Positions 1 through 23,375 of a stretch of 28,822 nucleotides of DNA are shown here, piece after piece. The notes under the pieces were generated by a model. It had not been told where the DNA came from. It was given only the letters and a program-made list of their open reading frames with translations, and ran no database searches. Each line of letters begins with the position of its first letter. Position 1 is the stretch's first letter. The DNA lies in the NCBI GenBank assembly GCA_004431415.1, contig QPMI01000616.1, forward strand, positions 1 to 28,822, read 5' to 3'. The position numbers were made by a program, and so were the translations under genes. This DNA comes from Cyanophora paradoxa CCMP329 (lineage: Eukaryota; Plantae; Glaucophyta).

Positions 1-426
1 GCGACTGCGCCAAATTCCCACTGCGTCTGGCTGCGTCGAGCGATGCAGCCTGGCAGCGCTAGCAGGCGTATCCTATAGCTAGTATAGTAGCTCGTAACCC
101 ATGCGGATTGCGGATTCAATGATTGCAGCGCGCGCGCTCGGGATCCACTGGGGCAGATCCGAGTGCGCGGGCGGATTGCAGCGCGCGCGCGGCTGTACCA
201 GTACCGCAGTACTAGTATATACGTATACTACGTGCATGCTTAGTTTGCTCGCGCTTCTGGGCCGCTGGGCCCGCGGCCGGGCCACAGCGGCGACAGGCCC
301 GTGGCCAGCTATTGTGAATCCGTGGCATGCGCTGTTCATAAAAGATGATGAACTGGAAGTATACAGCTGTCCGGGATCCGAAATCTATCCCACGCACCAG
401 CCCCTGAAGCCCGAATCCGAGCGCTA

Positions 427-2920
427 GCTAGTTGCCGAGAAAACGAAAACTAACTGCAATCAGCTGCCGAACAGCGGGTAGTGCTGCTGTCCTGCCTGCA
501 GCATCGTCCGCCGGCGGCACAGGCAGAATGCGCCCCCCCGCACTCGCTGCGGCAAGTCACCGCGCTCGCTGCGCTCAGAATAAGCGGACTCCTAGCTTAA
601 AGAGAGAAGTGGGAAGCAAGGGGACGTCTGCGCACCGAGAGAGGTAGCAGTCCGCTTCCTCCGCATCCAGCATCCCTTGCCCGTGCCCGACGTCGAAGGC
701 AGAGCGCTCGCTGCGCACGGAGAGGAAGTCAATCTAATGAAAAGAATGCGCGCCGATTAACAGACCGCACCTGCGGCCGAGCGCCCACACATGGACTGGA
801 AGAGCGCCTCCTCTGGCCAAAAGGGCGGAGCGTTGATGGCGCTCGCCGCGCTGCGGCATCACGGTCAGCGCGCGGATCGAACGAAGATAAGCGAGTGGTG
901 ACGGCAAACGACCGCTGTGCACCACAGCAGGGTGAGTGAGCAGCAGGCCGGCTCGCGCCGCGTCCGGGCCGGTCCGGCATCCCTCGACCCGCGATGCCGA
1001 AGCTGCGTTCGGAGCGTCAACCGAAAGAAGAGAAGAATGCGCGCCGGCAAACGACCGCACCTGCCGCACCTGCGCCCCAGCGGCCGCAAGCACAAGAACT
1101 CCGAGGCCGCGCCGTCCAGAAGCCACGCGTCCGAGAACGGCACCCGCTCCGCTGCGCACGCGGCCGGCGTCACAAAAATCAACGCGAGAGTAGCGGAAAC
1201 AAGAGCGAGCACCTGGCCTGCGGGAGAAGACGCTAGGCGAACTGGATGGTGGTGCTCTGCTCGCGCGGGCCAGTCACCCCGTTCCCTGGACGCCAGCGGA
1301 ATGAGGGATTGGGGCAAAGGAGATGAAACGAAAAAGCACCTTGCTTCGCATCGGCAGCCGCCTTCCCTTTTTGCGCGAGCCGACCAAAAGAAGGAACACT
1401 TGGCGGCGGCGGCCGGGCTAAGAATGCAGATCAAGGGCGCTTGAAGAGGCAAGAACGACGCGTACACGAGCGCTCTTCGCCACGAGCGGGCGCCCGCCCT
1501 GGGGCAGCGCTCTGCTTTTGAAATCAGGCCGGCGACAGGCGGGGGACGCGAGAGGATGCAAGTAGGCACCTTCGAACGTCGTTCGCGCTCGAGGCTCGTC
1601 AAGTTCGCGGCGCTGTGCGGACTCCGTTTTGACCTGTTTGAAATTGTGGAGTAAGGGAGACCAGGATGCGCTGCGGTGGAGAGCCAGCGCCGACGCACCG
1701 AGATTGCATTGCGTCCCGTGCTGGAGCCGCAGCCAGTTCTTGCCCTGCGTGCTCTTCAAAGTGCAAGGCCGGAATTCGGGTACACAGCTGTTGGGCGAAA
1801 AGCGGCAGCGACACCAACAGCGATATCGATCGAGGATGCTTGAGGACGCCTTTCGGCTCAGCTTTCCGAGGAAGCCTGAGCGGTCCCATGCTCCTTCGCA
1901 GCTCGCTCGGCCGCGGTGCCGAGCACGTTGGCGGAAGCTCGCAGATGCGGCGCGCGGCCCTTTCGTTAGCTATAGCTAGGCGCATGTGGCCCGTGTTCTC
2001 GCAGCTGCATGTCTATGCCCTGGCGTGGCCGTGTTTCCGTGCGGCGCCGCGTTCACGGCCTGCCTTCCTCCCACAAACCGACGACGTGCGTCTATGCCGT
2101 GCCCTCCGCGTTCCACGCGTGACGTACAGCTCACTCGATTTCGCAGGGATCGCCGGCGGTGAGCCCCGTCGGCCCAGTTGGTTGGCCCTGCGCCAAGCCG
2201 AGCCAAGGTGCGGCTACCGCCTGGACGGGGTGCGGGATCAGACGGGCTGCATCCCGTTTCTCGCTGTTGATCTCTCCTTCGTAGCGGGCGATGGCGTGCC
2301 GGCAAGCTGCTGGGCGGCGATCGCGCCCTGCCGAGCGCGTCGCCATCGCCGGGGGTGGGCCACCGGACCATAGCTTTGCGTCAGCGGCGCGCGAACGCAT
2401 GTCTCACGATTCTTGCTTGCGTTCCAGGCGCTGGATCGCGCGCGCCGTCTCCAGGCTCCGAATTCTGGACCCCTCTTCCACAGCTTGGTGAGGCTCAGGC
2501 CTAGACGAGGTGAGTTGAGCGGTCTGTGTGCGTACGCGTCGCTGACAAGGCGCTCCTGTCGCGCAGGATGATCGAGTCCCGGGGCGATGGTCGGAGGGAG
2601 CGGAGGGCGGCAGCATGGATTGCACGGCGGGGCGTAGGATCGGCGGGCGGCGGCCCGGGCGCACGCCTCGCGCGCCGCCGGCTGCCCGCCCGCCCCGGCC
2701 CGCCCCGGCGCCGTCGCTTCGCCCGCCCCGGCGCCTTCGCCCCGCTCCGCCCCGTCGCTTTCGCCCCGCCCCGCAGAGTCGGTGCGCCGTGCTGAGCGCC
2801 CTGCCCGGCACAGCCCGGCCTGCCTGCTGCTGACGCCCTCGCAGCTCTCGAGGATTTTGAATTTTCGGGGCGTCCCGCTGCCGCGGGAGAGGATCTTCGA
2901 GCGCCCCGCCGCCCCCGCCG
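427..2920 (+). repeat. Left arm of long inverted repeat (partner 8687..11080)
   Basis: GCTAGTTGCCGAGAAAACGAAAACTAACTGCAATCAGCTGCCGAACAGC at 427 matches the reverse complement of ~11025-11080. 1009..2920 matches 8687..10610 almost continuously; the ORF track shows the same peptides on opposite strands (e.g. MRLAIANERAARR at 1599..1985- and 9628..10017+). Confidence 0.95.
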
Positions 2921-2959
2921 TCCTCAGGGGACAGCGCCGGGGGTCGCGGAAGCTCAGCA

Positions 2960-3345
2960 GGCGGCGGCGCGGCTCACCTGGCGGGGCGGAGGCGCGGCGG
3001 GCGGCGGCACGGCTCGCCGGGAGGGGCGGCGGCGCGGCGGGCGGCGCGCAGCTCGCCGGGCGGGGCGAGGGTGCGGCGGGCGGCGGCGAAGCTCGGCGGG
3101 CGGGCGCGGGAGCGGCGGGCGGCGGCGCGGCTCGCCAGGCGGGGCGGAGGCGCGGCGGGCGGCGCCGCGGCTCGCGGGGCGGGGCGGAGGCGCAGCGTGC
3201 TGCGGCCCGGCTCGCCGCACGGGGTGGAGGCGCGGCTGGCGGCGGCGAGGCTCGCCAGGGGGGCGGAGGCGCAGCAGGCGGACAGGACGGCAGGCGCGGC
3301 GGGCGGCGGCGTGGCTCGCGGGGCGCCGCGGTGGCGCGACGCGGC
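2960..3345 (+). repeat. 40-bp G-rich minisatellite, about 9-10 degenerate copies
   Basis: (G)GCTC anchor recurs at 2971, 3011, 3051, 3091, ~3129, ~3169, ~3209, ~3249; consensus near GGCTCGCCGGGCGGGGCGGAGGCGCGGCGGGCGGCGGCGC. Confidence 0.9.
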
Positions 3346-3399
3346 TTCGATTCGTGATCACTGATCATGAGCGTGATGATCTCTTGTCATTCAATTTAA

Positions 3400-6300
3400 A
3401 CAGATCCGAGGCTGCGCTGCCCTGCAACTTGGCACAAATGAAGTGTTGGCAATTGGGGCCCACTATTGCTTGGCGAGGCACCAGCACCTTTTCAGCGCTT
3501 GCCACTATTAAAATCAAATCTAGCGCCTTTGATATAGTCCAGGTACGCTTCTCCAGTCAGTGAAAAGGCCGGGATCTTTTCCTGGCTTCATGATCAATTC
3601 TCATGATCATCATGAACACTGCATGCATGGGTGCTCAGATCCTCACTGCGAGCCAAATTGAAACTCGGGGCCCATATTGCATACGCCCGCGAGCATGCTG
3701 TTGGGGGTTCTCGAGGGCGCTGGATTTGATTATGAAGTCGGTTGAAGACAGATCCGAGGCTGCGCTGCCCTGCAACTTGGCACAAATGAAGTGTTGGCAA
3801 TTGGGGCCCACTATTGCTTGGCGAGGCACCAGCACCTATTCAGCGCTTGCCACTATTAAAATCAAATCTAGCGCCTTTGATATAGTCCAGGTACGCTTCT
3901 CCAGTCAGTGAAACGGCCGGGATCTTTTCCTGGCTTCATGATCAATTCTCATGATCATCATGAACACTGCATGCATGGGTGCTCAGATCCTCACTGCGAG
4001 CCAATTGCAAATTGAAACTCGGGGCCCATATTGCATACGCCCGCGAGCATGCTGTTGGGGGTTCTCGAGGGCGCTGGATTTGATTATGAAGTCGGTTGAA
4101 GACAGATCCGAGGCTGCGCTGCCCTGCAACTTGGCACAAATGAAGTGTTGGCAATTGGGGCCCACTATTGCTTGGCGAGGCACCAGCACCTTTTCAGCGC
4201 TTGCCACTATTAAAATCAAATCTAGCGCCTTTGATATAGTCCAGGTACGCTTCTCCAGTCAGTGAAAAGGCCGGGATCTTTTCCTGGCTTCATGATCAAT
4301 TCTCATGATCATCATGAACACTGCATGCATGGGTGCTCAGATCCTCACTGCGAGCCAAATTGAAACTCGGGGCCCATATTGCATACGCCCGCGAGCATGC
4401 TGTTGGGGGTTCTCGAGGGCGCTGGATTTGATTATGAAGTTGGTTTAAGACAGATCCGAGGCTGCGCTGCCCTGCAACTTGGCACAAATGAAGTGTTGGC
4501 AATTGGGGCCCACTATTGCTTGGCGAGGCACCAGCACCTTTTCAGCGCTTGCCACTATTAAAATCAAATCTAGCGCCTTTGATATAGTCCAGGTACGCTT
4601 CTCCAGTCAGTGAAAAGGCCGGGATCTTTTCCTGGCTTCATGATCAATTCTCATGATCATCATGAACACTGCATGCATGGGTGCTCAGATCCTCACTGCG
4701 AGCCAAATTGAAACTCGGGGCCCACATTGCATACGCCCGCGAGCATGCTGTTGGGGGTTCTCGAGGGCGCTGGATTTGATTATGAAGTCGGTTGAAGACA
4801 GATCCGAGGCTGCGCTGCCCTGCAACTTGGCACAAATGAAGTGTTGGCAATTGGGCCCACTATTGCTTGGCGAGGCACCAGCACCTTTTCAGCGCTTGCC
4901 ACTATCAAAATCAAATCTAGCGCCTTTGATATAGTCCAGGTACGCTTCTCCAGTCAGTGAAAAGGCCGGATCTTTTCCTGGCTTCATGATCAATTCTCAT
5001 GATCATCATGAACACTGCATGCATGGGTGCTCAGATCCTCACTGCGAGCCAAATTGAAACTCGGGGCCCATATTGCATACGCCCGCGAGCATGCTGTTGG
5101 GGGTTCTCGAGGGCGCTGGATTTGATTATGAAGTCGGTTGAAGACAGATCCGAGGCTGCGCTGCCCTGCAACTTGGCACAAATGAAGTGTTGGCAATTGG
5201 GGCCCACTATTGCTTGGCGAGGCACCAGCACCTTTTCAGCGCTTGCCACTATCAAAATCAAATCTAGCGCCTTTGATATAGTCCAGGTACGCTTCTCCAG
5301 TCAGTGAAAAGGCCGGGATCTTTTCTGGCTTCATGATCAATTCTCATGATCATCATGAACACTGCATGCATGGGTGCTCAGATCCTCACTGCGAGCCAAA
5401 TTGAAACTCGGGGCCCATATTGCATACGCCCGCGAGCATGCTGTTGGGGGTTCTCGAGGGCGCTGGATTTGATTATGAAGTCGGTTGAAGACAGATCCGA
5501 GGCTGCGCTGCCCTGCAACTTGGCAAAATGAAGTGTTGGCAATTGGGGCCCACTATTGCTTGGCGAGGCACCAGCACCTTTTCAGCGCTTGCCACTAAAA
5601 ATCAAATCTAGCGCCTTTGATATAGTCCAGGTACGCTCTCTCCAGTCAGTGAAACGGCCGGATCTTTCCTGGCTTCATGATCAATTCTCATGATCATCAT
5701 GAACACTGCATGCATGGGTGCTCAGATCCTCACCGTGGCACTGCGAGCCATTGCAAATTGAAACTCGGGGCCCACATTGCATACGCCCGCGAGCATGCTG
5801 TTGGGGGTTCTCGAGGGCGCTGGATTTGATTATGAAGTCGGTTGAAGACAGATCCGAGGCTGCGCTGCCCTGCAACTTGGCACAAATGAAGTGTTGGCAA
5901 TTGGGGCCCACTATTGCTTGGCGAGGCACCAGCACCTTTTCAGCGCTTGCCACTATTAAAATCAAATCTAGCGCCTTTGATATAGTCCAGGTACGCTTCT
6001 CCAGTCAGTGAAAAGGCCGGGATCTTTTCCTGGCTTCATGATCAATTCTCATGATCATCATGAACACTGCATGCATGGGTGCTCAGATCCTCACTGCGAG
6101 CCAAATTGAAACTCGGGGCCCACATTGCATACGCCCGCGAGCATGCTGTTGGGGGTTCTCGAGGGCGCTGGATTTGATTATGAAGTCGGTTGAAGACAGA
6201 TCCGAGGCTGCGCTGCCCTGCAACTTGGCACAAATGAAGTGTTGGCAATTGGGGCCCACTATTGCTTGGCGAGGCACCAGCACCTTTTCAGCGCTTGCCA

Positions 6301-7790
6301 CTATTAAAATCAAATCTAGCGCCTTTGATATAGTCCAGGTACGCTTCTCCAGTCAGTGAAAAGGCCGGGATCTTTTCCTGGCTTCATGATCAATTCTCAT
6401 GATCATCATGAACACTGCATGCATGGGTGCTCAGATCCTCACTGCGAGCCAAATTGAAACTCGGGGCCCACATTGCATACGCCCGCGAGCATGCTGTTGG
6501 GGGTTCTCGAGGGCGCTGGATTTGATTATGAAGTCGGTTGAAGACAGATCCGAGGCTGCGCTGCCCTGCAACTTGGCACAAATGAAGTGTTGGCAATTGG
6601 GGCCCACTATTGCTTGGCGAGGCACCAGCACCTTTTCAGCGCTTGCCACTATTAAAATCAAATCTAGCGCCTTTGATATAGTCCAGGTACGCTTCTCCAG
6701 TCAGTGAAAAGGCCGGGATCTTTTCCTGGCTTCATGATCAATTCTCATGATCATCATGAACACTGCATGCATGGGTGCTCAGATCCTCACTGCGAGCCAA
6801 ATTGAAACTCGGGGCCCACATTGCATACGCCCGCGAGCATGCTGTTGGGGGTTCTCGAGGGCGCTGGATTTGATTATGAAGTCGGTTGAAGACAGATCCG
6901 AGGCTGCGCTGCCCTGCAACTTGGCACAAATGAAGTGTTGGCAATTGGGGCCCACTATTGCTTGGCGAGGCACCAGCACCTTTTCAGCGCTTGCCACTAT
7001 TAAAATCAAATCTAGCGCCTTTGATATAGTCCAGGTACGCTTCTCCAGTCAGTGAAAAGGCCGGGATCTTTTCCTGGCTTCATGATCAATTCTCATGATC
7101 ATCATGAACACTGCATGCATGGGTGCTCAGATCCTCACTGCGAGCCAAATTGAAACTCGGGGCCCACATTGCATACGCCCGCGAGCATGCTGTTGGGGGT
7201 TCTCGAGGGCGCTGGATTTGATTATGAAGTCGGTTGAAGACAGATCCGAGGCTGCGCTGCCCTGCAACTTGGCACAAATGAAGTGTTGGCAATTGGGGCC
7301 CACTATTGCTTGGCGAGGCACCAGCACCTTTTCAGCGCTTGCCACTATTAAAATCAAATCTAGCGCCTTTGATATAGTCCAGGTACGCTTCTCCAGTCAG
7401 TGAAAAGGCCGGGATCTTTTCCTGGCTTCATGATCAATTCTCATGATCATCATGAACACTGCATGCATGGGTGCTCAGATCCTCACTGCGAGCCAAATTG
7501 AAACTCGGGGCCCATATTGCATACGCCCGCGAGCATGCTGTTGGGGGTTCTCGAGGGCGCTGGATTTGATTATGAAGTCGGTTGAAGACAGATCCGAGGC
7601 TGCGCTGCCCTGCAACTTGGCACAAATGAAGTGTTGGCAATTGGGGCCCACTATTGCTTGGCGAGGTACAAGCACCTTTTCAGCGCTTGCCACTATCAAA
7701 ATCAATTCTAGCGTTTTTGATATAGCCTAGATACGCTTCTCCAGTCAGTGAAAAGGCCGGGATCTTTGCTGGGCCTCATGATCATGATCA
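3400..7790 (+). repeat. Tandem satellite array, 348-bp unit, ~12.6 near-identical copies
   Basis: CAGATCCGAGGCTG anchor at 3401, 3749, 4103, 4451, 4799, 5145, 5492, 5849, 6197, 6545, 6893, 7241, 7589 (spacing mostly exactly 348; range 346-357). Hand count for one unit is about 51% GC. Confidence 0.98.
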
Positions 7791-7819
7791 GTGATCATGA
7801 TCATCATGAGCACTACACC

Positions 7820-8465
7820 GCCTGGCGACCCGCGCCACCGCCCGCCGCGCCTCCGCTCCGCCCCGCGAGCCGCGCCGCCACCCCTGAGCCCCCGCCCCGT
7901 CCGACGAGCCGCGTCGCCGCCCGACGCGTTTCCGCCCCGCCCCGCGAGCCGCGGCGCCGCTCGCCGCGCCCCCGCCCCGCCCGGCGACCCGCGCCGCCGC
8001 CCGCAGCGCCTCCGACCTGCCCGGCGGGCCGCGCCTCCGCCCGCCGCGCCTCCGCCCCGCCCCGCGAGCCGCGGCGCCGCCCGCCGCGCCTCCGCCCCGC
8101 CCCGCGAGCCGCGCCTCCGCCCGCCACGCCTCCGCCCTGCCCGGCGAGCCGCGCCTCCGCTCGCCGCGCCTCCACCCCGTGCGGCGAGCCGCGCCTCCGC
8201 TCGCCGCGCCTCCGCCCCGCCCTGCGAGCCGCGTCTCCGCCCGCCGCGCCCCCGCCCCGCCCCGCGAGCTGCGCCGCCACCCGCTGAGCCCCCGCCCTGC
8301 CCGGAAAGCCGAGTCGCTGCCCGCGCGCCTCCGCCCCGTCCGGCGAGCCGCGTCGCCGCCCGCCGAGCCTCCGTCCCGCCCCGCGAGCTGCGCCGCCGCC
8401 CCCCGCGCCCCCGCCCCGCCCAGTGAGCCGCGCCGCCACCCTGCCCGGAGAGCCGCGCTCGCCGC
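7820..8465 (-). repeat. 40-bp C-rich minisatellite, about 16 copies (inverted copy of 2960..3345 unit)
   Basis: GAGCC/GAGCT anchor at 8066, 8106, 8146, 8186, 8226, 8266 (exact 40-bp period); the unit is the reverse complement of the left minisatellite unit. Confidence 0.92.
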
Positions 8466-8686
8466 GTCTCCCACCTGGCCGGAGGGAGCTGTGCCACCAC
8501 CCGCTGTCTCGCTGAACCCGCCAGGCAAGTTAAGCGGGGGGAGAGAGGGGGGAGGGAGGGAGAGCCGTGGGCGAGGGGAGGGCATACTCCGAGGGCGCTT
8601 CGGCGCGGCGGCGGCAGGGCTCTTGCGGCCGCGGGGTGCACAGGCAGCCGCGAGGGCGGGCGCGGGGCGCTTGTCGTTGTGCGGCG

Positions 8687-11080
8687 CGGCGGGGGCGGCG
8701 GGGCGCTCGAAGATCCTCTCCCGCGGCAGCGGGACGCCCCGAAAATTCAAAATCCTCGAGAGCTGCGAGGGCGTCAGCAGCAGGCAGGCCGGGCTGTGCC
8801 GGGCAGGGCGCTCGGCACGGCGCACCGTCTCTGCGGGGCGGGGCGAAAGCGACGGGGCGGGGCGGGGCGACGGCGACGGGGCCGGGCGAAGCGACAGCGC
8901 CGGGGCGGGCCGGGGAGCCGGCGGGGCTGCACGGGGCTGCACGGGGCGTGCGCCCCGGGCCGCCGCCCGCCGATCCTACGCCCCGCCGTGCAATCCATGC
9001 TGCCGCCCTCCGCTCCCTCCGACCATCGCCCCGGGACTCGATCATCCTGCGCGACAGGAGCGCCTTGTCAGCGACGCGTACGCACACAGACCGCTCAACT
9101 CACCTCGTCTAGGCCTGAGCCTCACCAAGCTGTGGAAGAGGGGTCCAGAATTCGGAGCCTGGAGACGGCGCGCGCGATCCAGCGCCTGGAACGCAAGCAA
9201 GAATCGTGAGACATGCGTTCGCGCGCCGCTGACGCAAAGCTATGGTCCGGTGGCCCACCCCCGGCGATGGCGACGCGCTCGGCAGGGCGCGCTCGCCGCC
9301 AGCGGCGTGCCGGCACTCCATCGCCCGCTACGAAGGAGAGATCAACAGCGAGAAGCGTGCGGCAGTTCGCCTGTCCCCCCGTTCCCGGCCAGGCGGCCGC
9401 CGCACCTTGGCTCGGCTTGGGCGCAGGGCCAACCAACTGGGCCGACGGGGCTCACCGCCGGCGATCCCTGCGAAATCGAGTGAGCTGTACGTCACGCGTG
9501 GAACGCGGAGGGCACGGCATAGACGCACGTCGTCGGTTTGTGGGAGGAAGGCAGGCCGTGAACGCAGCGCCGCACGGAAAACCGGCCACGCAGGGCATAG
9601 ACATGCAGCTGCGAGAACACGGGCCACATGCGCCTAGCTATAGCTAACGAAAGGGCCGCGCGCCGCATCTGCGAGCTTCCGCCAACGTGCTCGGCACCGC
9701 GGCCGAGCGAGCTGCGAAGGAGCATGGGACCGCTCAGGCTTCCTCGGAAAGCTGAGCCGAAGGGCGTCCTCAGCATCCTCGATCGATATCGCTGTTGGTG
9801 TCGCTGCCGCTTTCGCCCAACAGCTGTGTACCCCCGAAATCGCGCGCCTTGCACTTTGAAGAGCACGCAGGGCAAGAACTGGCTGCGGCTTCCAGCACGG
9901 GACGCAATGCAATCTCGTGCGTCGGCGCTGGGCTCTCCACCGCAGCGCATCCTGGTCTCCCTTACTCCACAATTTCAAACAGGTCAAACGGAGTCCGCAC
10001 AGCTGCCGCGAACTTGACGAGCCTCGAGCGCGAACGACGTTCGAAGGTGCCTACTTGCATCCTCTCGCGTCCCGCCTGTCGCCGGCCTGATTTCAAACGC
10101 AGAGCGCTGCCCAGGGCGGCGGGCGCCCGCTCGTGGCGAAGAGCGCTCGTGTACGCGTCGTTCTTGCCTCTTCAAGCGCCTTGATCTGCATTCTTAGCCC
10201 GGCCGCCGCCGCCAAGTGTTCCTTCTTTTGGTCGGCTCGCGCAGAAAGGAGAAGGCGGCTGCCGATGCGAAGCAAGGTGCTTTTTTCGTTTCATCTCCTT
10301 TGCCCCAATCCCTCATTCCGCTGGCGGTCCAGGGAACGGGGTGACTGGCCGCGCGAGCAGAGCACCACCATCCAGTTCGCCTAGCGTCTTCTCCCGCAGG
10401 CCAGGTGCTCGCTCTTGTTTCCGCTACTCTCGCGTTGATGTTTTTGTGACGCCGGCCGCGTGCGCAGCGGAGCGGGTGCCGTTCTCGGACGCGTGGCTTC
10501 TGGACGGCCGTGGCCTCGGAGTTCTTGTGCTTGCGGCCGCTGGGGCGCAGGTGCGGCAGGTGCGGTCGTTTGCCGGCGCGCATTCTTCTCTCTTTCGGTT
10601 GACGCTCCGAGCTCAGCGAGCGCTGCGCCGTCGCGGCGACCGCGTTCCGGGCGCTCTCAATCTCGGTGTGGGCGCTCGGCGACAGGTGCGGTCTGTTTAT
10701 TGGCGCGCGTTCTCTCTTCTTTTGATTGACATTCCTCTCCGTGCGCAGCGAGCGCTCTGCCTTCGACGTCGGGCACGGGCAAGGGATGCTGGAAGCGGGA
10801 CGGGCCTCCTGCTCTCTCCTTGCTGCGGTGCGCAGACGTCCCCTTGCTTCCCACTTCTCTCTTTATGCTAGGAGCCCGCTTATCCTGATGCGCGCAGCGC
10901 AGCGAGCGCGGCGACGTTCCGCAGCGAGTGCGGCGAGGGCGATCTGCCTGGGCCGGAGGCGGCTGCTGGCGATCGGCTGGCATGCGCAGGCGGCGGACGA
11001 TGCGCAGCAGGACAGCGTACTACTGCTGTTCGGCAGCTGATTGCAGTTAAAACGTTAGTTTTCCTTTTCTCGCAACTAGC
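8687..11080 (-). repeat. Right arm of long inverted repeat (partner 427..2920)
   Basis: Reverse complement of the left arm; near-identical over 8687..10610, more diverged with indels over 10610..11080. Confidence 0.95.
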
Positions 11081-11532
11081 GCGGGGGACGACGCCGCTTC
11101 AGGTCATTGCGTATTGTGTAAAGCCCTTACAGCCTAAGTTGCAGCGGGGCAGATTGGGGCAGATGAGCTCGAGGCGCCCGCGCACGATCGGCCACGAGGC
11201 CGCTAGCTGTTTCACAGTGTGCGCACATCTACACGAGGCGCCGCGCGGGCTCGGGAATTGGCCCCACGAGGCGCTGAGCTGTGTGCGCATGCGCACATGT
11301 ACTACGGTACGACCTAGGGGCGCCGGCGCCACGCGTACGCGTCCCCGTCGAGCTTGACGACCGACTCTCTCTCTCGGCGAGCTCGAGCCGCGTCGAGCTC
11401 AGGCCCATAGCAACGAGCTCGACGACCGTCGACGGTACCGGCCACGCTGCTGGCTATAGCTACGTATACGCCGGCGCAGTGCGTCCAGCTGCGTCGAGCG
11501 GCGCAGTGCGTCAACTTCGAGTGCGTCGAGCG

Positions 11533-11651
11533 ACGCAGTTTCGTGAAACTTGGCGCACTGCTTGAAACTGCGTGGAGATTTCGAGCAGTGCTTCATTTCC
11601 GACGCAATGCTTGAAATTCCCACGCAATGCTTGAAATTTCCGACGCAATGC
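11533..11651 (+). repeat. 20-21-bp tandem repeat ACGCAATGCTTGAAATT(T)CC
   Basis: ACGCAATGC at 11602, 11622, 11643; degenerate copies at ~11533, ~11554, ~11585. Confidence 0.85.
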
Positions 11652-11819
11652 GTGGGTGAGCCAAAAGTGCCGGGGTAGTGCTGGCGGCGCAGGAGGCGGC
11701 GGCACCGTGGTGGCCATCGCGGCGGTGGCAGGGGCGGCTACCAGAGCGGCGGTGGAGGCGGCGGCCAAGGCGGGACGGGATCTAACGCACCCTCCTCGGC
11801 AATCCCGCCCGATGCAGCG

Positions 11820-12010
11820 CCGACTGGCCCCGTTGTTGACGCGCCGTCTCGCGCCCGACTGCCCCGTTGTTGACGCGCCGTCTTCGCGCCCGGCTGGCCC
11901 CGTCACTGACGCGCTGCCTTCGCGCCCGACTGGCTCCGTTGCTGACGCGCCGTCTCCGCGCCCGACCGGCCCCATCGCTAACGCGCCGCCCCCGAACCCT
12001 CGCCCGACTG
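11820..12010 (+). repeat. 36-bp coding tandem repeat (PTGPVxDAPSxR), about 5 copies
   Basis: CCGACTGGCCCCGTTGTTGACGCGCCGTCT(T)CGCGC units; the first two are 35 bp (one base missing each), later ones 36 bp. Confidence 0.85.
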
Positions 12011-15000
12011 ACCACGGAGACGCCGTGCAGTCCGGTGGTCCTGACTCGGGCCGGGAGACTGAGGCTACGACGGACAGCCTGGCCATGGTACCGATCGCTC
12101 CGGTGCAAACTGTCCCGATCACGCCGACGCAGCCCTCGGCATCGGACATCGCGCACTTCGTTCGGGACGTCAACGCCACGACGGCGACGCAGCCGGTAAC
12201 GTCGGCGGCGGAGAGGACGGCCCCCGTCCCCGTCGCCATCCCCGTCGCTGAACCCGCGTCGCCGTCCCCCTCGTCGACTCACGCGACCGGCCCGTCGTCG
12301 CCGGCCCCGTCTGACTTGTCGACAGAGATGGAAACGGGAAGCCGTACTGCGGCCGAGTCCCGTGTTCCAATTCGGTGTGCGCAGCCCCGGCGGGGCGTCA
12401 CTGCCGGCAGTATCCGCGACCTCATCAACGCTGGCCTCCGCCGGCACGACCACACTCGCATGTCCGCCGCCTTGGCTCCCGTCACGTCCAAGAAAACCCC
12501 GCTCTTCACTCGAAACTTTGGCCGTATGCACCGCCCGCGCCCGAACGCCATCAATCCCGTCGCCCGCGTCGCAGTCACGAGGTCGCTCACCTTCGCGGCC
12601 GCCCCCTCGGCGAAGAGCACGAACTCCGACGCTGACTCTGTGCGGGAGCCGAAGACCCGGACGTACTGCGCCCTGGGGACCCGTCACAGAGTCGCCGATG
12701 GACACTGCACTCGGCCCGCTAACCTCCAAATCGAGCACCGACTCCCCCGCAGCCACCTCGCAGCAGGAGGGGAACGTCTCGAAGGGAAGTGGGCGGCCGA
12801 CCCCGAACTACAAGGCCCCGCCCGCCAAGATGCCCGAAATCGACTCGCTACCGGCGGTCGAGGGCTGCGAGTCCTTGGTACCCCTTTGCACTGACTGGCT
12901 CGACAACGTTGCTTACAACATGCACACTCGCGTGTTAACAACCGCATGCACGTCGACGGCATCCAGTGCACTGACTGGCTTCGTGATGGCATCCCTTCGA
13001 GCGACCAGCGCCAGATCCACGCGCGTACCATCCTTTACTGCCCGCCCTCCAGATGCTCACGACGTACCTCGAGCCGAAGGGCCCCGGTGTCTGCTGGGCT
13101 CGCGTCCGCAACGCTATCGATGCGGAAGGCGACTCGGAGGAGGCGCGCGCGCACCGCTTCCCCAAGCCCCACGACAACATGTACCCCGTCTTCACGCAGG
13201 CCTCCAATTACCGTACCGCGGTATTCACGGAGGATGCGCACATGCCTCGCCGTCGGGACCTGTCTTTCGCCAACGAGACGTGTGCTGACTGCCACCCCAT
13301 GTCGTCGGCCGCCAGGAGAATGGTACCCTTGTTGCCCGCCCCATTCCTCGGCACACCGTCGTGACGCGCCCAATGACGGACTTCGTACTGCTCACTCCGC
13401 GCTCATCGCTGCGCTTGAAAGCCTCCCTACGTCGCACCCGTTCGTGACCCGACCAGGGAGATGGAGTTCTTTGTGATCGCCGCGACATCTCCGGACACGC
13501 GAAGAACGGGCGGTTCCCGATCCCGCCGGCGCTCGACGTGAACCCCGGCATCCCGTGCGCTGACGGCACTCACGCTCACCACAGCCACCCGCATTGGCAC
13601 TTGCTGGCGACCCGCCGCTCATCAACCCGAAAGGCCACAGTGAGCACAAGCGTCTGAATGCGGCCGTCACACGCATCATTGCAGACACGGCCACTGAGGA
13701 TGACGTGACAACGTTGCGCACGTGGATCGCAATCGCCCGTGAGACGACGACTATCGCGGCAATTAACACTAACATCTCGAACACCAACGAGCAGCTTCGC
13801 CGGCCCTACCGGGGCGCTGAGGGCGAGCAGCTGTTACACTTGGTTGAAATGGCAGCGATGGCCATCACGAACACGGGCGCCCCGCCGCCTCGCACGCGGC
13901 AGGCTGCGGCCAACCACGTCACGAGTGTACTGCGTAAGGAGCTCGAGGCATTCGATGTTGACACTGACGGTTCAGGCAATCGTCAACGCTCTGTGCGCCC
14001 GTCGTGTCTTCACTTTCACCGACGGCGCCATGGACACAACCGACGCGCCGCCTGCACCTACGACAACGCTGACGCTCCAGGAGCTGCTGTCGTCGAGTCC
14101 CTCCTGAACCGTGTCAAGACGTCCTTCACCGACGCGCAGAACCGCAGCCAACATTCATGCGCCCCAACCGACGAACGGCCGCTGTCAATTACGTTGAGAG
14201 CACACTCCGCACGTACCTCCGTGGCTACGACGTCGAGTCTACGATCCTACTTCTCGTCTACATTCTCGAGCGCGAGGTGAGCTACGGTTCGCCTCAGGCC
14301 CTGACGCGACTTCGGCAAAGGCTGCTGACGCCTACTCTCGTTTCGTCGCGGCAAACGCTCCGACCGACCCCGTCGCCGACCCAGCTCTGTCGCGACGGCA
14401 GAGGGCCTCGCCCCTGAGGACAAGACGCCAATCGTCCCGCCGACCACGCCCACTCCACCGCGCCCGCCGTACTGCGGCCCAAGGCGTCGGAGGACAGGGC
14501 TGACAATGACCCCATCAACCGCAACCGGAAGTTGCGCGAGATGCTGATGGACATTGCGGAAGACTCGATCACGCTCATCGCTCGTCGCCACCAGGCAGCG
14601 GGGAGGTATGAGCGCGAGGGTGGAGACCGCGTCTTCGCCTCTCGCACGGTCGAGAAGATCATGGTCAGTGTTGGGGGACAGCAAATTCTTCTCTTCCTGT
14701 CGCCAGTCGACATGCCTGCACCGTGCCACACGTGCAGCATCGGCCCCGATGGCTCACCCGTCATCGTGAACCACGGCTCCGTGCATCAGTGATCAGCATT
14801 GCGCACCGCTACTACGAGTACATCGACTCGACCACGGGCAACACGGTGACAATGACTAACGTCGAGCTTCAGGAGCACTGCCGCCTCTGCACAACGCCGC
14901 CGTACATGGAGTTCGTCCGCAATTGCCCCGTACCGTCGCCAACCTCACGCCAGCGCACGCCGTACCCGAGTACTCTGCGACCTGACGATGCACCGGCGGA

Positions 15001-16125
15001 CATCACGCTCGACGCTCTGTACGGAGTGACGATGGAAATGAAGACGCTCTTCCTGCGGATTATCGGTCTGTTAATGGATATCACCCCACAGGGAACGACG
15101 TCTTTGACGGGGAACGACGACTGGCCTCGGGTCGCTGACATCTTCCTTAACGTCGACGTCAGCCCCTTCACCGTCCGCGCCAGCACCCTCCGGCCTGGCG
15201 TTCGCGACGCGAGTACTGGACCGATAGGCACTCGGCCAATCATTCTCGCCCCGGGAGTTGTCAACACCTCTGGGCAGGACACGTCCGACTCGCGCGAACG
15301 ACTGTGAACGCGTCGCTTCCCGTCTGCTTGTCGGCACCGGCGTTCTACCATGCTCACGCGTTAATGCACCCGTCGATGAGCCGAACACGCGCCTCGGCCC
15401 GACACCAACTGATCTTCCGCCCTACCCGGTGCCTGAGACCACGGTCGCTGCAGCTGGGGAGTGAGCCGCAAGTTGGCGTCGATTTACGTCGCTGCCGTTC
15501 TACACGACTGGCCGGCTCGACAGCGGGACAAGATTAAGCCGCATCTCACTCTCCGAACCAACGACGTCGACATGGAGTACTTGCGACTCGCCGCCGAGAA
15601 CGCGCGACTTCGGGACCCGACGCAGTTTTCGGCGAGGTACCTCGAAGTCCACAACGTGTTGACAGACATCCTTCGTCGCCGCACGCCTGGAACGCCGTCC
15701 CCGACCACTCCGCCCGACAAGCACGCGCAGCTGCTGGCCGACGAACAGCTCGCACGTGAACTGCAGGCTCGCCTCGACGCCGAAGCTGCAAGGGAGAGGA
15801 CCCGGTGCAGGCCGCGGCGCAAGCCCCCTACTTGCAGGCTGCAATCGGTGGTATTGCTCGTGGCCGCACCATGGACGCCCGTCGCCGTACTGCGGCAGCA
15901 CAGGCTCCACCGCGCCAATCGGCGAGGCACGGGGGAACGGTCAGGGCCGCGGCCGCGCGCTCCCGATTCATACCAGCCGGCCCCAGACCCCGGCAACCCT
16001 CACTACCACGACGACGACATGACGTGCCCAACGGCACCGGTGACACCGCCGACCGACGCCCCGGAGCCCCCGGCCCCGCGGAACGACCACCCCCTGCGCC
16101 CGAGGTGACGGCCTCGTCGACGGAC

Positions 16126-16206
16126 ACTCCGGACGCCCAGCCCGTTGCACCCGCGACGACGACTCCGGACGCCCAGCCCGTTGCACCCGTGACGACGACT
16201 CCGGTG
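16126..16206 (+). repeat. 36-bp coding duplication (TPDAQPVAPxTT x2)
   Basis: ACTCCGGACGCCCAGCCCGTTGCACCCG(C/T)GACGACG twice in tandem. Confidence 0.85.
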
Positions 16207-19200
16207 GACCCGACGCCCGCTCTCGAGACGCCGGTCTCGTCGACGGCCGCTCGAGATGCTTCGCCCATCGCACCGGCGATGGCGACCTCGCTGACGACCC
16301 CCGCACAGCGTCCCGTCCCCCACGGCCGTGGCTGCGGTCTCGACGGCCCGTCGCCTGCGCCTGAGCTACTGGCCCCGTCGACGCCCCGCCAGCCCCGGCC
16401 ACGACTGTGACGGCGGCCCCGCCGCAGAGCCCGGCCCAACCCCCGATGCTGCCGATCCCGTCACTTCACCCCGACTACACTGCACCGACCGACGCGTCGA
16501 TGCCTGACTCGACGACTGCCGACTCGTCGGGCACTGAGAGGACCGAGGACGTGCCCATGGGCGACCCGCGCGTTTCGAGGGGAATCATCGTCGACACGCC
16601 GACCTTGCCGAGCCCTCACGACGACCGTGACAGTCCTCCTGACACCGACGAAGACACGTCCAGCGACTCGGAGCCCGAGATCAAGGACGTGGCCGCCGAC
16701 CTTGGACACCGCCACGCCTGGACGATCCTTCGCCTCAAGCCGTGGTGCACACCAGCTGCGTGCGTACCTGGACACGCCGCGACGCTTCATGGTCACAACG
16801 ACGACGACGGATTGGCGCAGACCCTGAGACGCCGACCCTCTTCGCCGCCAGCGAGCTCACGAGCTGCATGCACCTCGCAGCTGCCCGCAGCAACACGCCT
16901 ACTGGGCAACCGTTGCTGGGTACTCGCCCGAGTGACCAGGCTCACTACCTCCTTCAACATCTGACCGAATTCCGCTCCGTCATCCACGTCATCATGCGCC
17001 TCGCGCGGGCTCAGCCCTTCGCGCCTGGGGAGACGGCGACCACGTGGCCTCACCCGAACGACCCGCTCGCCGATGTCCTCGGACGGCCAGAGATGCTGGA
17101 GCTGTTTGGTTTGACACCGACAGAGTTCACTCTTGTACACCAGTCCAAGACTCCAGTCGTACCGTGCATCCTTCAGGTGGCTGTCAACCTTGCCCGCAAT
17201 CTCCGGACGCTGCACTACGACGTGGAGATGACGGAGAGCGATGAACGGTTCTTGAACTTCGACAAGATCACGAACACGGCGACGCGCCTTGCAACAATCA
17301 GGCAACTGGTCCAAACTGTCAAGTTCACGGCCCCGCTCACAGGACCTGACGACATCTATCTGTCTACGCTTCGACACGGTTCACCGCCGCCGACATCGCC
17401 TTGTCGATGCGTTCGACGGCCCTGGCGCGGGCGTGGGACATCGCTGCATACTTCGACCATTACAAGTGGGACGAGACGCGCGACCGCTACGGGGATAGCC
17501 GATTTGCTCACCTCTACGACGTTCGTGACCCAGCACCGAGCTCCGACCGTCCATGGCCGACGAGTCACGCGCCGTTGCTGTCAATGCTCACCGAGCAAGT
17601 CGAGAACGTACTCCGCCTCGTCAACATCACAGCCGACGTCGAGGGCCCGGCAACTTCCTGCGCCGTTACTACACGTCCCGTTTCAACCCGAAATCCGACG
17701 CGAACCCGGCTACGAACCAGCGGGCGACCGCCGAGCTCGCGGAGGAGATCCGGCTGAACAGCCAGTTAGCAGTGGTCGCGGCACGCGATGTCCATCGTCT
17801 GCGCACGCCCCCGTCAGCGAGTCCGACCTACACCACTGTCTTCGGCACGGACTGTCCCGTCACCGCTCCGGCGTCCTCCCTCAAATTTCACGAACGTCGT
17901 CGCCGCGTCTGTCACGGAGACGACTGCGCTGGCAAGGCTCGCCGAGCTACATGACACCACCGTTGTCGCGATGTCAATCACTACGTTCATGCACAAGCGT
18001 CAACTCGCCAAGAAGGGCAAACCGATCCGTCTCGAATCGCGACTGCACGCCCCCGTCTTCACCCCGAAGCAGCCCGAGCCAGCTGTCGAGCTCTATTACA
18101 ACTCTGACCGTTACATAATGGTGCACCCTGAAGAGGCGGCGCTCCTGGCGTGCAAAACTGCGTGCGCTCCCATATCCTCCAGCTGACTCTCGAGGCCATG
18201 CGTCGCGCGTACAAGCTCGAGACGGAGTCAAGCACTCGTACTGCGAGCAAGCTTGCTTTCGGCCTCGTCGCTCGACTCGACACTGCACTTAGCAAGGCTA
18301 CGACCACCCAGCGCTTGGCGGTAACACGGGCCTTCCTCCTGGACGCCGAGCATCGATTGAATCTGTTCTACTGCATGCTTTACCCGCGCTACCGCGATCA
18401 CCTACTCCCTGTCCTCCCCAGTCCGATGGTACCCGTCACCGACCCTCTCGCCGTCCCGGTCCCACGGCCCCCTGAGCGCGACGTTGACGAGTACGGATAC
18501 CTGACACAGTGGACGTCGGACGGCATCGACATCTTGCCTCGCGTTCCTGACTGGGATTCCCTCGTTGGACTTGTCGACGACATGAGCAAGGACACTTTCT
18601 GGAACTCCAACACGTACTTCGGGCTTCGCGCCCGCGCTATGGTCTACGGAACAGAGCGCAAGCGCCCCCGCGAGAAGCGACGAATGACGAGAAGTTGCAG
18701 AAGAAGGAGCGCAAGGCCGCCCGGCTCACTCCCGAGGAGGTCGACTCCATCATCTCCAGAATTTTGAGCGAACTCCACACTGTTCCTTTCAAGGAGGTGC
18801 TACTCTCGGAGAACGCTGACATTCCTGACGTCTATTTCTGGGCCTTCCTCAACGAGGAATGGGCGAAGGGCTTCACGGTCGTCGACGGCGCTGGCTACCA
18901 GCACGGAGTGTGGCCGGATCTGAGCGGCGTGATGGTCCGACGGGAACCGCGACCTGATTCGACGGAGAACGAGCGCGACACGTTCTATGCGGGTTTTGGA
19001 CGGCGCAACAATCACATCAACGGGGAATTATTCGCCCAAACGATCAACGACTGGTACCCAATCCGTCTCCACAATCCTCGCCCCCCACTCCGTACGGCAT
19101 GCGCACATACAGCCCCGAGGAGACGCGAGCTGGAGGTGACTTCCTACCTCTGGATACTGATCCGGGACGGGATACCTCCTATCACATCTTCATGACACCG

Positions 19201-20639
19201 CTTCTCTTCACGAACACGGACTTCCTGGCCACAGCGTACTGCAAAACGATCCAGGAACATGGGCGACACGCGCCCCACATCTTCGCCGTCGCGGCTCACA
19301 TCCTCGGAGGCCCAGCCCCGTTCGGACAGACGGCTGATCTGACCGAGGAGCTCACTGTGGAGGACGGGCACAGACCGGAGGAGCTCCCGGAGCCGCCGCC
19401 GTCGAAGAGCTGGAGGGAATCCCGACTCGGGACCCACCCCCAGTTCATCCCGCCACCACGACAAAGAAGTACATGCACGTCCTAGGTGAGGTCCACATGC
19501 CATACGTGCTACTCGGCGACTCTGGTCTCGAGGCATTTCTCCGGCGCGTCCCGTACATGCGCCCATTCCTCATGAAGATGCACGTACGCTGGTCGAACTT
19601 CTCGCGAGCACTCAGTCGTGTCCTACGCTACGGCGTCGGCCCCGGCACCTACCCGTACCGCGCCGGTGCTCCCGGCCATGGCGAACTCAGCCAGCACAAC
19701 CGCGCGGCCTGCCCTTCCGATCGTTCCTGATCACGGCCGCCGACGAGTTCCACCCGGCCAACAAGTATGCCGACTACTTCGACTGCATCTACGACGAGGA
19801 CAACCACGCGCACCTCCGTGACTCCGCTTCACGTCAAGATGTCGAACGATGCTTCTACGAGATTGCCATGCCCGACGACCTCAACGCGCCGCCCATGACT
19901 CTTACGCCGGCCAATGCTGACCTGTGCGGCCCTCGAATCGTCCGATTCACGCACGTTGCACCGCCGGACCCAGCCGCGGTGCCCCAACACGATCCAGAAC
20001 CGCTCGCACATCACTATCTTCGACGCGAACAACCGGAACACCTGGCAGCAGATCATCGCGGGCACGAGGAAACCCCCAAACGAGGCGGCGGGGCCGCACC
20101 CGTGCGGCCCCGACCCCAAGTACTTCCGGTGTCCGTCAATGACTACACTGGCCCTGGGGGCGTCGTCGTGTCTCTGCGTCGTCGCGGGCCCACGGGCACC
20201 GCGCCTGCAACGCCCCCGTCGTCCACCAGGTCCTGGGGTTCCCGCTTTCGGTACACACTTGGGTGTACGGAATCGCAGCGTACCTGGCGGCGGCAGTCAA
20301 GCTGCACGGTGCCTTGTCGTTCTTCCTCGAGCCCTACCGGGGAACTCGGGAACATCATCATCGACTACGTTCGTAGCCACGAGGATGAGCTGCACTTCCG
20401 CTTCACGGCTTCAGGCGAAGTGGCGCGCAGTGCCAAACTCGACAAATGGTACGAGGTCGAGTACCCTGACTGCGAACGCGTCGACCCGGCACATTTAATC
20501 ACAGCCTTCGAATCCCTACTGCACAAGGCAACCAACGACTGGTTGGCGGTCCAGATCAAGCACGAGACACCCCCGGCGGCTCGCGAAGATGTCGACATGG
20601 ATCGAAACCACTGCTGGCCCGTAGCATTCCGACTCCCGG

Positions 20640-23375
20640 ATGGAGTCATCAACGCACTCAACGCCCAAGTCCGGGGCGCTGACTTCGATCCCACGAACGA
20701 TCCGTCACACCCGCATCGTCCCAGTGTCTATGACGTCAACGCGAGCGCAGTGCGCAACGCTATTATGGATTTCGAACAGCGATACGCCGACATACACGAG
20801 CAATTCCGTCACGCCGAATATGGCAACTTCACATTCGATCCATTCTACAATGAATTCGGCGCCGCCATCTTCAGTCGCGAACCGCAGGCGCGGGCGCTAC
20901 TCCACGGTTGGTTGGAACAATTCGTTTACAATCACGCCACCGTCGACGCGGCGACGAGGCGGCCCATCACGTTCACTAGCCGCGAAGCCTACCGGGCGGT
21001 ACAGATCGTCGACGTCCTCCCCTGCGTCACTCCCTGGGCGATCCGGACAACGACAGCCTCCTTCGTCAGATCCCCACATTTACATTGGTCACGGCCCCCA
21101 CGGCGCGCCTGTCGACCCGTACGAAGGCCGCACGCGCTTCACTAACATCATGAACTACATCACTACGACGAAGGCAGAGGAGTCGCGCGCGTACATTTGG
21201 GACCCGCGCCTCGACGGCAAGATCAAGCTCGTGGGCACGGACGAGTACATTCGTCGGAACCCTGGGATTGCGCGCAAGCCCTTTGTCCGACCCTTCGTCG
21301 TCTGGTCGACCGACTTCAAGGATCTGCGCACCAACGAGCCGACGGGACTGGCACGCTTCGGTCACATCCAGGGTGTTGTCTTCAAGCCATCTGGCAGTAA
21401 CAGGCCTCCGCGTCGTAGTCCTACGGGGACCGAGACGACGGGAACCTCTGACGGCGACGACTCCAGCTCGGACAGTGGTGGCTCCACCGCCGAGTCCGTA
21501 GCTCCATCGGAGACCCCGTCGGCCGGGACGCCGAGCCTAGCCTCGCGCGTGCAGTCGTCCGCGTTCGCCCCCCACGGCCTCCTTGGACCGCTCACACGGC
21601 AGCACACGTACACGATCGCATACAACGACCTCACTAATCCCAGGACGTCGACGGATCTCACGATGGGCTGCTGGCTCCTCTACTCTGGACGGGGACCGGA
21701 CTACGAGCGGATCACGTCCGCGCGACACCGTGCCTTCGAGGACCCTGAATTCGCTGCCAGTTATCACTTGTACGACTGGTCGCCGCTTCAGCGGTCTCAC
21801 CAACTCAACGCCCACGCAATCCTGGAGACGCTCCACGAGATCGAGAACTTTCGGTGGGATTTCACAACCTCTCAGGGCCTGTCAGCCGACCTCGCTTTCA
21901 CTCGCGCCTTGTTCACTCGGGCGGCCTTCATCCTCAATTCAATCGGCCTCGCGGCGTGGGACGTGGTCCTCCACAATGACTTCCGTAGTCATGACGCTCA
22001 ACGGACACGTTTCTACGAGCGGCACGTACTCCAACGCGACACGCGCCTCCGCCACGCTTGGCCCCAACTCGTCAAATATCTCCGGGCGTCTCTCTCGCGC
22101 CACCGCGAAGCCATCCCGTTCCGATCCCCCGGAGAGCCTGGCTACCGGCCGGCTGAACGACGGGATGGCGCAGCGGGGACCGAAGTTGACGCGATCAACG
22201 AGATTCACTATGGCTGGCCCAGCAACCGCCACCTCAACAAGCTCGCAAACGCCGACTGCAAGCCCATCCTTGGCGTCGGATACTTTTCAGCCACAATGCG
22301 CAATCACCGGCCCCCGCTGCGTCTGTCGGCAGCTCCCTGCAGGGCACGCCCATTCGCCGCGACGGACGTCCTCATGAACGTGCACAGGCGGACAACCACG
22401 CGGAAGCGACCTCGCCTCAAGCGGACGGCACCGCTCCCGCCAGCCAGCGTCATCTCCGGTTCGACACCGTGCACACCGTATGAGCAGAGCTACCTCGCCT
22501 CGCTTCGCGTCTGCGCGGCACGCATGTTGGGATTTGACGACGTCGAGGACCCCCTTGACGTTCCCCTCTTCGGCGACGGCGGCCCGTCAGTACCACACCC
22601 CATTGCGCGAATGACGGACACGAACCGCACGCTCAGAGAGCGCATCAACGACGGCCGAATCTGCGTCAACTTGCACATCGCCGCTATCGATCACCGACGA
22701 CAAGTCCTTCAATACCTCCTCACCAAGGCATTGGTGGATACAGGAGCCGCTGCGGACGTACTCGACGGCAGTATCGCCGACAAACTGCCAGGCCTTCGCT
22801 ACAGCAACGCTCCGCGCGTGCACCTCACCGGCTTTGGAACGGACATGACTGCCTATGCGCGCATCGCATTCATTGCAATTAAGGTTGGTCCGGTCACAAT
22901 TCCGCGGAAGGTCCTCGTCGTCGCGCCTGGTCTCATGGGCAACACTCCAATGCTACTCGGCCTCACAACGCTGGTGGCGCTCAACGCTCACATCGTGCTC
23001 GACCCAGCAAATTGGGGAATGACGATCACGTCGCCTGACTCCTCGGATGGCGAACGATTCCACGTCCCTTTTCGGCTGCGGGCCAGCACGACGGCGGCGT
23101 TCTGGTCCGATTGGCGAAGGACATCACTGTACGGCCGGGTGAATCGCTCGTTCGATGTTACATGCCACAAACGACTTCGAACACGACTCTCGGCGCACCG
23201 GAAGTCCTCCTCACTCCGCCACCACTCCTCCTCGACGACGACGGCTTCGACGGAGCCGACGAAGTCGAATTCTTGGTGCCATACCAAATTCACCGCAACC
23301 CAGCACACGGCACGTTTTTCGTGCAGATCTGCAACCCTCACAGGCGGCCTGTCCGCCTGCGAGCCGGAACTGTGA
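20640..23375 (+). CDS. Polyprotein fragment containing retropepsin-type aspartic protease
   Basis: KALVDTGAAADVL (DTG at 22737-22745), flap-like VHLTGFG and C-terminal PMLLGLTTL; the protease spans ~22650-23000. The true frame is probably ~21030-23090. Confidence 0.85.
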   Translation: MESSTHSTPKSGALTSIPRTIRHTRIVPVSMTSTRAQCATLLWISNSDTPTYTSNSVTPNMATSHSIHSTMNSAPPSSVANRRRGRYSTVGWNNSFTITPPSTRRRGGPSRSLAAKPTGRYRSSTSSPASLPGRSGQRQPPSSDPHIYIGHGPHGAPVDPYEGRTRFTNIMNYITTTKAEESRAYIWDPRLDGKIKLVGTDEYIRRNPGIARKPFVRPFVVWSTDFKDLRTNEPTGLARFGHIQGVVFKPSGSNRPPRRSPTGTETTGTSDGDDSSSDSGGSTAESVAPSETPSAGTPSLASRVQSSAFAPHGLLGPLTRQHTYTIAYNDLTNPRTSTDLTMGCWLLYSGRGPDYERITSARHRAFEDPEFAASYHLYDWSPLQRSHQLNAHAILETLHEIENFRWDFTTSQGLSADLAFTRALFTRAAFILNSIGLAAWDVVLHNDFRSHDAQRTRFYERHVLQRDTRLRHAWPQLVKYLRASLSRHREAIPFRSPGEPGYRPAERRDGAAGTEVDAINEIHYGWPSNRHLNKLANADCKPILGVGYFSATMRNHRPPLRLSAAPCRARPFAATDVLMNVHRRTTTRKRPRLKRTAPLPPASVISGSTPCTPYEQSYLASLRVCAARMLGFDDVEDPLDVPLFGDGGPSVPHPIARMTDTNRTLRERINDGRICVNLHIAAIDHRRQVLQYLLTKALVDTGAAADVLDGSIADKLPGLRYSNAPRVHLTGFGTDMTAYARIAFIAIKVGPVTIPRKVLVVAPGLMGNTPMLLGLTTLVALNAHIVLDPANWGMTITSPDSSDGERFHVPFRLRASTTAAFWSDWRRTSLYGRVNRSFDVTCHKRLRTRLSAHRKSSSLRHHSSSTTTASTEPTKSNSWCHTKFTATQHTARFSCRSATLTGGLSACEPEL

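Follow-up and report, generated by a model that had tools for sequence, protein, structure and literature searches.

The systems closest in kind to the locus reported here are foldback transposons of Drosophila. The arms of FB consist almost wholly of short tandem repeats. FB and Galileo, the latter a member of the P superfamily, share long, internally repetitive inverted arms that make up most of the element, and most of their copies are without a transposase (PMC3573991). Tetris of Drosophila virilis, which is apparently non-autonomous, combines modular long inverted arms with internal tandem repeats of about 220 bp whose copy number is variable; these repeats are internal to the inverted repeats and have grown into kilobase-size satellite arrays outside the element as well (PMC4079207). 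We analyzed a stretch of 28,822 nucleotides (the window) from the glaucophyte Cyanophora paradoxa CCMP329 (contig QPMI01000616.1, assembly GCA_004431415.1), which begins with a pair of long inverted arms around a central tandem array. This structure is probably a non-autonomous DNA transposon of the foldback type, present in multiple copies, of which this one, about 11.8 kb long, is nested in a giant Ty3/gypsy-like retroelement.

How does this element compare with those of Drosophila? Inverted arms around a central satellite array were a combination that a first-pass annotation, made from the letters of the window, did not recognise. It is precedented in kind: FB, Galileo and Tetris all carry tandem repeats (PMC4079207, PMC3573991). 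Whereas Tetris has its repeats inside the arms, the Cyanophora element has a single one-way block of 348-bp units between them, with no sign of outside expansion. Its arm-internal repeat is a 40-bp GC-rich minisatellite, and there is no sequence relationship between the two elements. Unlike FB, the Cyanophora element has about 2.9 kb of unique sequence with introns in each arm. The P-superfamily membership of Galileo rests on a transposase gene, and Pfam finds none in the Cyanophora element. Three features set it apart from FB, Galileo and Tetris: the long unique intron-bearing arms, the 40-bp GC-rich minisatellite and the single one-way central array. It is of a known kind and appears to be undescribed in glaucophytes; a literature search returned no paper that treats foldback elements, satellites or centromeres in Cyanophora, and no chromosome-level assembly.

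If our reading holds, a glaucophyte example joins the short list of tandem-repeat-carrying foldback transposons, a group that has been used to explain the birth of satellite DNA inside mobile elements. The element would also help to account for part of the “unknown repeats” of the C. paradoxa genome, which stand at 11.5% within a total of 29.4% repeats in a report where satellites and chromosomes go unmentioned (PMC6704402).

Layout of the Element

The mirror-image structure at 1-11670 is confirmed as real. Along the window, an arm is followed by the 40-bp minisatellite, a TGATCA border, the 348-bp array of 12.6 units, a second TGATCA border, the inverted minisatellite and the inverted arm (Table 1). 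Tandem Repeats Finder (TRF), the BLASTN alignment of the arms, the inverted minisatellites and the TGATCA borders all bear out the modular mirror architecture described in the first-pass annotation. Of the 11.6-kb palindrome ending at 11651 that it proposed, the inverted arms stand and two other parts do not. The end lies at about 11670, and the array is direct, not mirrored, which makes the whole a direct array flanked by inverted arms rather than a complete palindrome. In a wider sense the arms are 1-3399 and 7785-11670, about 3.4-3.9 kb each, and make up most of the element. Because the first base of the window pairs with about 11561 of the right arm, the left tip lies some 110 bp outside.

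The core was also described as a low-GC island of about 51%, and so it is. The 4.4-kb island at 3400-7784 has a GC content of 0.51, compared with 0.66 for the arms and 0.885 for the minisatellites; outside the repeats the window has 0.60-0.69. At the two edges of the island, 3355-3370 and 7782-7797 form an exact inverted match of 16 nt. Of the 33 TGATCA sites in the window, 30 fall in the array or its borders.

The Right End and Other Copies

The element ends sharply on its right side. Contigs over the outer right arm end at 11670 in short-read runs X1, X4 and X15, and at 11677 in X17. The final 176 bases of a 2469-nt contig (X15, X17) match 11674-11845, and the 2293 bases upstream of them are other DNA. 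Element contigs thus stop at 11670 while the flank joins other DNA. Sequences left and right of about 11670 are each repeated with different partners, the hallmark of a repeat that has another repeat nested inside it.

The flank consists of internal sequence from a giant Ty3/gypsy-like retroelement. Its protease, reverse transcriptase, RNase H and integrase zinc domain are found at 20640-28413, and a chain of open reading frames on the + strand runs from the junction onwards, extending for about 9 kb (11671-20640) ahead of the protease. Two sister copies of the flank, the gene models P0005 and P0007 (tig00000581 and tig00000381), encode a further 370-410 residues ahead of the exon beginning at 12031, and in a TBLASTN search these residues were unmatched anywhere in the window. 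No Pfam family was found in the sister models P0005-P0007, which gave just a sub-threshold EAD10 match, and no pair of long terminal repeats (LTRs) belonging to the retroelement lies within the window. The case for 11671 being internal to the retroelement is built on the sister gene models together with the 2469-nt contig, not on LTRs. The most economical interpretation is a retroelement interrupted by the mirror-symmetric unit; insertion of the retroelement beside that unit with an LTR end does not fit. The + strand chain also holds a 36-bp coding tandem repeat (11820-11988).

The last bases of the right tip, 11665-11670, are AAGTG and then C. They loosely recall the TAGTG end of CACTA/EnSpm elements, a superfamily with CACT(A/G) termini and a 3-bp target duplication, so that membership is at most possible. 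Non-autonomous elements of this group (CMC) also share short subterminal repeat arrays adjoining the tip. In several DNA-transposon superfamilies, such short subterminal repeats are the usual transposase-binding sites, and the subterminal repeats of the Cyanophora element are candidates for the same role. Their 17-bp motif is near-palindromic and recurs once on the left, at position 32 of the window.

The element appears to be multi-copy. The C. paradoxa reference consists of 712 Canu contigs with genes predicted by RNA-seq-trained Augustus (PMC6704402). Gene models of the arms are identical or near-identical at the DNA level on four of these contigs (tig00021358, tig00000383, tig00021326 and tig00001027), of which this locus accounts for at most one. 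Variant minisatellite contigs with depths of about 55-70 each would correspond to about 10-14 copies, figures that GC bias could also yield. Because of this bias, and because summed contig depth is a rough measure without a single-copy calibrator, we give the copy number as at least 3-4, perhaps about 10. A one-off inverted duplication, which the first-pass annotation had named as fatal to its proposals, is contradicted by the arm models on four contigs and by the contig breaks at 11670. Exact patterns taken from the right tip and the 348-bp unit had no match in metagenome contigs or viral contigs, and six open reading frames of the window were all absent from a protein collection.

The locus has what is expected of a foldback element: long inverted arms as most of its length, tandem subrepeats within the arms, and no transposase of its own, Pfam having found no family at or above threshold in 25 open reading frames and gene models of the arms, array and edge. 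The first-pass annotation had left the choice between a centromere and a foldback transposon. The second is favored by the arms on several contigs, the sharp end and the interrupted retroelement, whereas the first sits poorly with a core that is a tandem array, with a repeat abundance explained by the elements themselves, and with nesting in a retroelement.

Several points weigh against a foldback transposon. Its copy number comes from the contig names of gene models and from uncalibrated summed depths, Canu may split one repeat over several short contigs, and the other copies are known by gene models and contig breaks. No read spans the whole structure. No transposase partner emerged, and the left tip, on which a target-site duplication, a matched terminal inverted repeat and an exact empty site depend, is outside the window. 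Finally, the summed depth of the outer arm (about 860) is similar to that of the flank (about 980), which leaves room for a composite unit copied whole.

The similar depths, with neither a target-site duplication nor a transposase in evidence, would suit a different history, in which a palindromic repeat multiplied through segmental duplication or recombination, perhaps as a composite with the neighboring retroelement, and did not transpose by itself. So would the identity of the arms, which is highest near the centre, as in palindromes preserved by gene conversion. Yet 11670 is precisely where contigs break. In another contig the flank is joined to different DNA, so that the two repeats occur independently, and the end of the element coincides with short subterminal repeats typical of DNA transposons. 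We regard spread by duplication as unlikely.

The Central Array

Alignment of the 13 units of the array shows that they are 98-100% alike; a run of four neighboring units shows no difference at all, and the partial unit at the end falls to 91-93%. Per bin, the 348-bp repeat reaches a summed depth of about 5,800-13,400, which is 10-15 times the depth of one arm. Because this ratio matches 12.6 units per element, the abundance of the repeat is accounted for by the elements, and the figures suggest no sign of large arrays elsewhere. At 4.4 kb the array is short of the tens-of-kilobase arrays of a satellite-based centromere, as far as summed contig depth, a rough guide, can tell.

Could the locus nevertheless be a centromere module in which inverted repeats enclose a satellite core, present once per chromosome and homogenised between chromosomes? 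The inverted repeats of Candida tropicalis centromeres are alike between chromosomes, and the centromeres of Schizosaccharomyces pombe, Komagataella phaffii and C. tropicalis share with this locus a core of a few kilobases flanked by inverted repeats of a few kilobases. Inverted repeats around a lower-GC core of about 4.4 kb resemble such small regional centromeres. Several near-identical copies exist, the neighborhood is rich in transposons, and the literature search gave no described Cyanophora centromere. However, the yeast cores are unique and defined by CENP-A, while the Cyanophora locus has a tandem array in the place of a unique core. Its 348-bp repeat is not in excess of what the elements carry, its sharp end, like that of a transposon, falls within a reading frame of a retroelement, and both arms are annotated as transcribed. 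We consider a centromere module highly improbable. The specific proposal that the near-identical palindromic units, each a 348-bp array between inward-transcribed arms, are the homogenised centromeres of the Cyanophora chromosomes, one on each, is hardly credible; if true, it would give the first glaucophyte centromere and an inverted-repeat type outside fungi. If the foldback reading holds, an attractive centromere candidate that lacked support falls away.

Some further observations concern the repeats. Most units contain the same ATG-started reading frame of 102 codons across the unit boundary (3603-3911 and all later units, such as 6051-6359); this frame lacks a Pfam family and could have arisen by chance. 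A 1657-nt contig of run X15 matches just 201 nt of the unit (7417-7617), with 17 differences, so an older, diverged relative of the unit is present in a different context. One unit folded as single-stranded DNA is unremarkable (z = -1.1). In DNA runs, words of the 40-bp minisatellite at 7885-8278 sum to depths of 33,000-56,000, which greatly exceeds the values for the arms. Variant contigs and joints for this repeat number in the hundreds, and the minisatellite family seems to occur widely in the genome outside this element.

The Inverted Arms

In a BLASTN alignment, 1002-2920 pairs with 10617-8687 at 96% identity over 1944 columns (E = 0), including a tract of 347 nt at 100%. Identity is uneven along the left arm: 98-100% at 1001-2200 and 2401-2600, 93-95% at 2201-2400 and 2601-3000, and about 91% at 401-800. 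The segment at 60-420 is barely alignable with 11070-11480, and likeness resumes in the terminal motifs. Besides the 40-bp, 17-bp and 20-bp repeats, there are 24-bp tandem repeats within the arms.

Each arm can be told apart in short reads. A contig specific to the right arm (8392-8716) has no mismatch and a depth of 608 and 566 in the two DNA runs X1 and X4, respectively. The junction of the left-arm type, seen as a skip of 591 nt or 565 nt, has a depth of 586 and 526 in the same runs. The inserted letters at these skips, 25 in X1 and 39 in X4, end in the exact reverse complement of left 2921-2945. Since the junction depths match (586 versus 608; 526 versus 566), left and right arms are equally frequent. 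Summed depth in the inner arm, where words are common to both arms, is about 1520-1800, about twice that of the outer arm. A very improbable explanation, that a chimeric foldback long read made a false palindrome, could draw on the lack of any read or contig seen to span both arms and the array, on the many 1-nt indels between the window and short-read contigs, and on the start of the window inside the left arm, but it is contradicted by arms that differ in a right-only segment, in minisatellite length and in their outer parts, by both arm types at equal depth in independent short-read runs, and by an exact 430-nt contig that crosses from the array into the right minisatellite.

In the interval 9566-10610, every short-read contig from four runs departs from the window at a dozen 1-nt indels and a few substitutions (e.g., at 9581 and 9582, with an insertion following 9590); some of these changes make the two arms identical. 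Residual long-read errors are probably present in the window, and for this reason the true identity of the arms is likely to be above 96%.

A Possible Mechanism

As a foldback transposon, the element would be moved in trans by the transposase of an autonomous partner, which might bind the terminal and subterminal repeats. The array may grow and shrink by unequal exchange or by replication slippage; because adjacent units are identical while the edge unit is degenerate, the pattern of units fits unequal exchange. Gene conversion within the element may keep the arms alike, as suggested by the tracts of 100% that adjoin tracts of 93%.

Table 1. Features of the foldback-type element and its right flank (window positions; x, number of repeat units)
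Feature	Position	Strand	Remarks
Left arm	1..2934	+	Tip missing; about 110 bp beyond window start
Left arm, terminal-type motifs	1..60
Left arm, poorly conserved part	60..420
Left arm, conserved part	420..2934
Left-arm inward-reading spliced transcription unit	1984..3361	+	Exact match to tig00021358_g20807 (P0001)
Left 40-bp GC-rich minisatellite	2935..3281	+	x8.8; GC 0.885
Left TGATCA border	3355..3399		Sites 3355, 3362
Tandem array, 348-bp unit, one orientation	3400..7784	+	x12.6; GC 0.51; TRF, 97% matches
Right TGATCA border	7779..7817		Sites 7779, 7785, 7792, 7798
Right-arm inward-reading transcription unit	7816..9629	-	Near-exact match to three gene models
Right 40-bp minisatellite	7818..8441	-	x15.6; reverse complement of left one
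Segment private to right arm, 245 bp	8442..8686		Backed by exact 325-nt contig in DNA run
Right arm	8687..11670	-	Complete to tip
Subterminal repeats	11490..11651		17-bp motif x3.1 (11490-11539); 20-bp motif x2.8 (11595-11651)
Right junction	11670..11674		Contig breaks
Flank, outside element: giant Ty3/gypsy-like retroelement interior	11671..28413	+	Protease, reverse transcriptase, RNase H, integrase

Gene Models of the Arms

The first-pass annotation saw no coding capacity in the structure. This agrees with the open reading frames, which have no Pfam family, and disagrees with the reference annotation, which has spliced gene models in both arms. The left-arm model P0001 has seven exons and short GT-AG introns, and maps to the window exon by exon without a mismatch. 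Three further models, P0002 (tig00000383), P0003 (tig00021326) and P0004 (tig00001027), map to 9629-7816 on the - strand, and their matches include base changes found only in the right arm as well as the private segment at 8442-8686. Introns of the arm models are 56-79 nt long with GT-AG ends, within the rounding of a codon-level mapping. Because splice patterns and frames differ among P0002, P0003 and P0004, and because the products are rich in Arg, Ala and Gly and without a family, the arm models are probably non-coding, at most inward-reading transcripts and not proteins. Such spliced transcripts from both arms point at the array from both sides, and a relevance to small RNAs is possible. 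In EukProt, open reading frames and gene models of the arms match C. paradoxa (EP00741) only.

Two sub-threshold Pfam matches among the open reading frames of the arms and array, Replic_Relax (20.6 bits against a cut-off of 25.3) and P5-ATPase (13.6 bits), are read as chance in GC-rich frames. Rfam gave no family in the window.

Contigs in two runs that we guess to be RNA stop matching the window at 9528, the predicted boundary of exon 1 and intron 1, which is consistent with splicing. A 103-nt skip with non-canonical ends (GA..CA) at 10798-10902 is seen in two RNA-like runs only (depth 124-137), and the DNA runs lack it; a variant copy or unusual processing might explain it.

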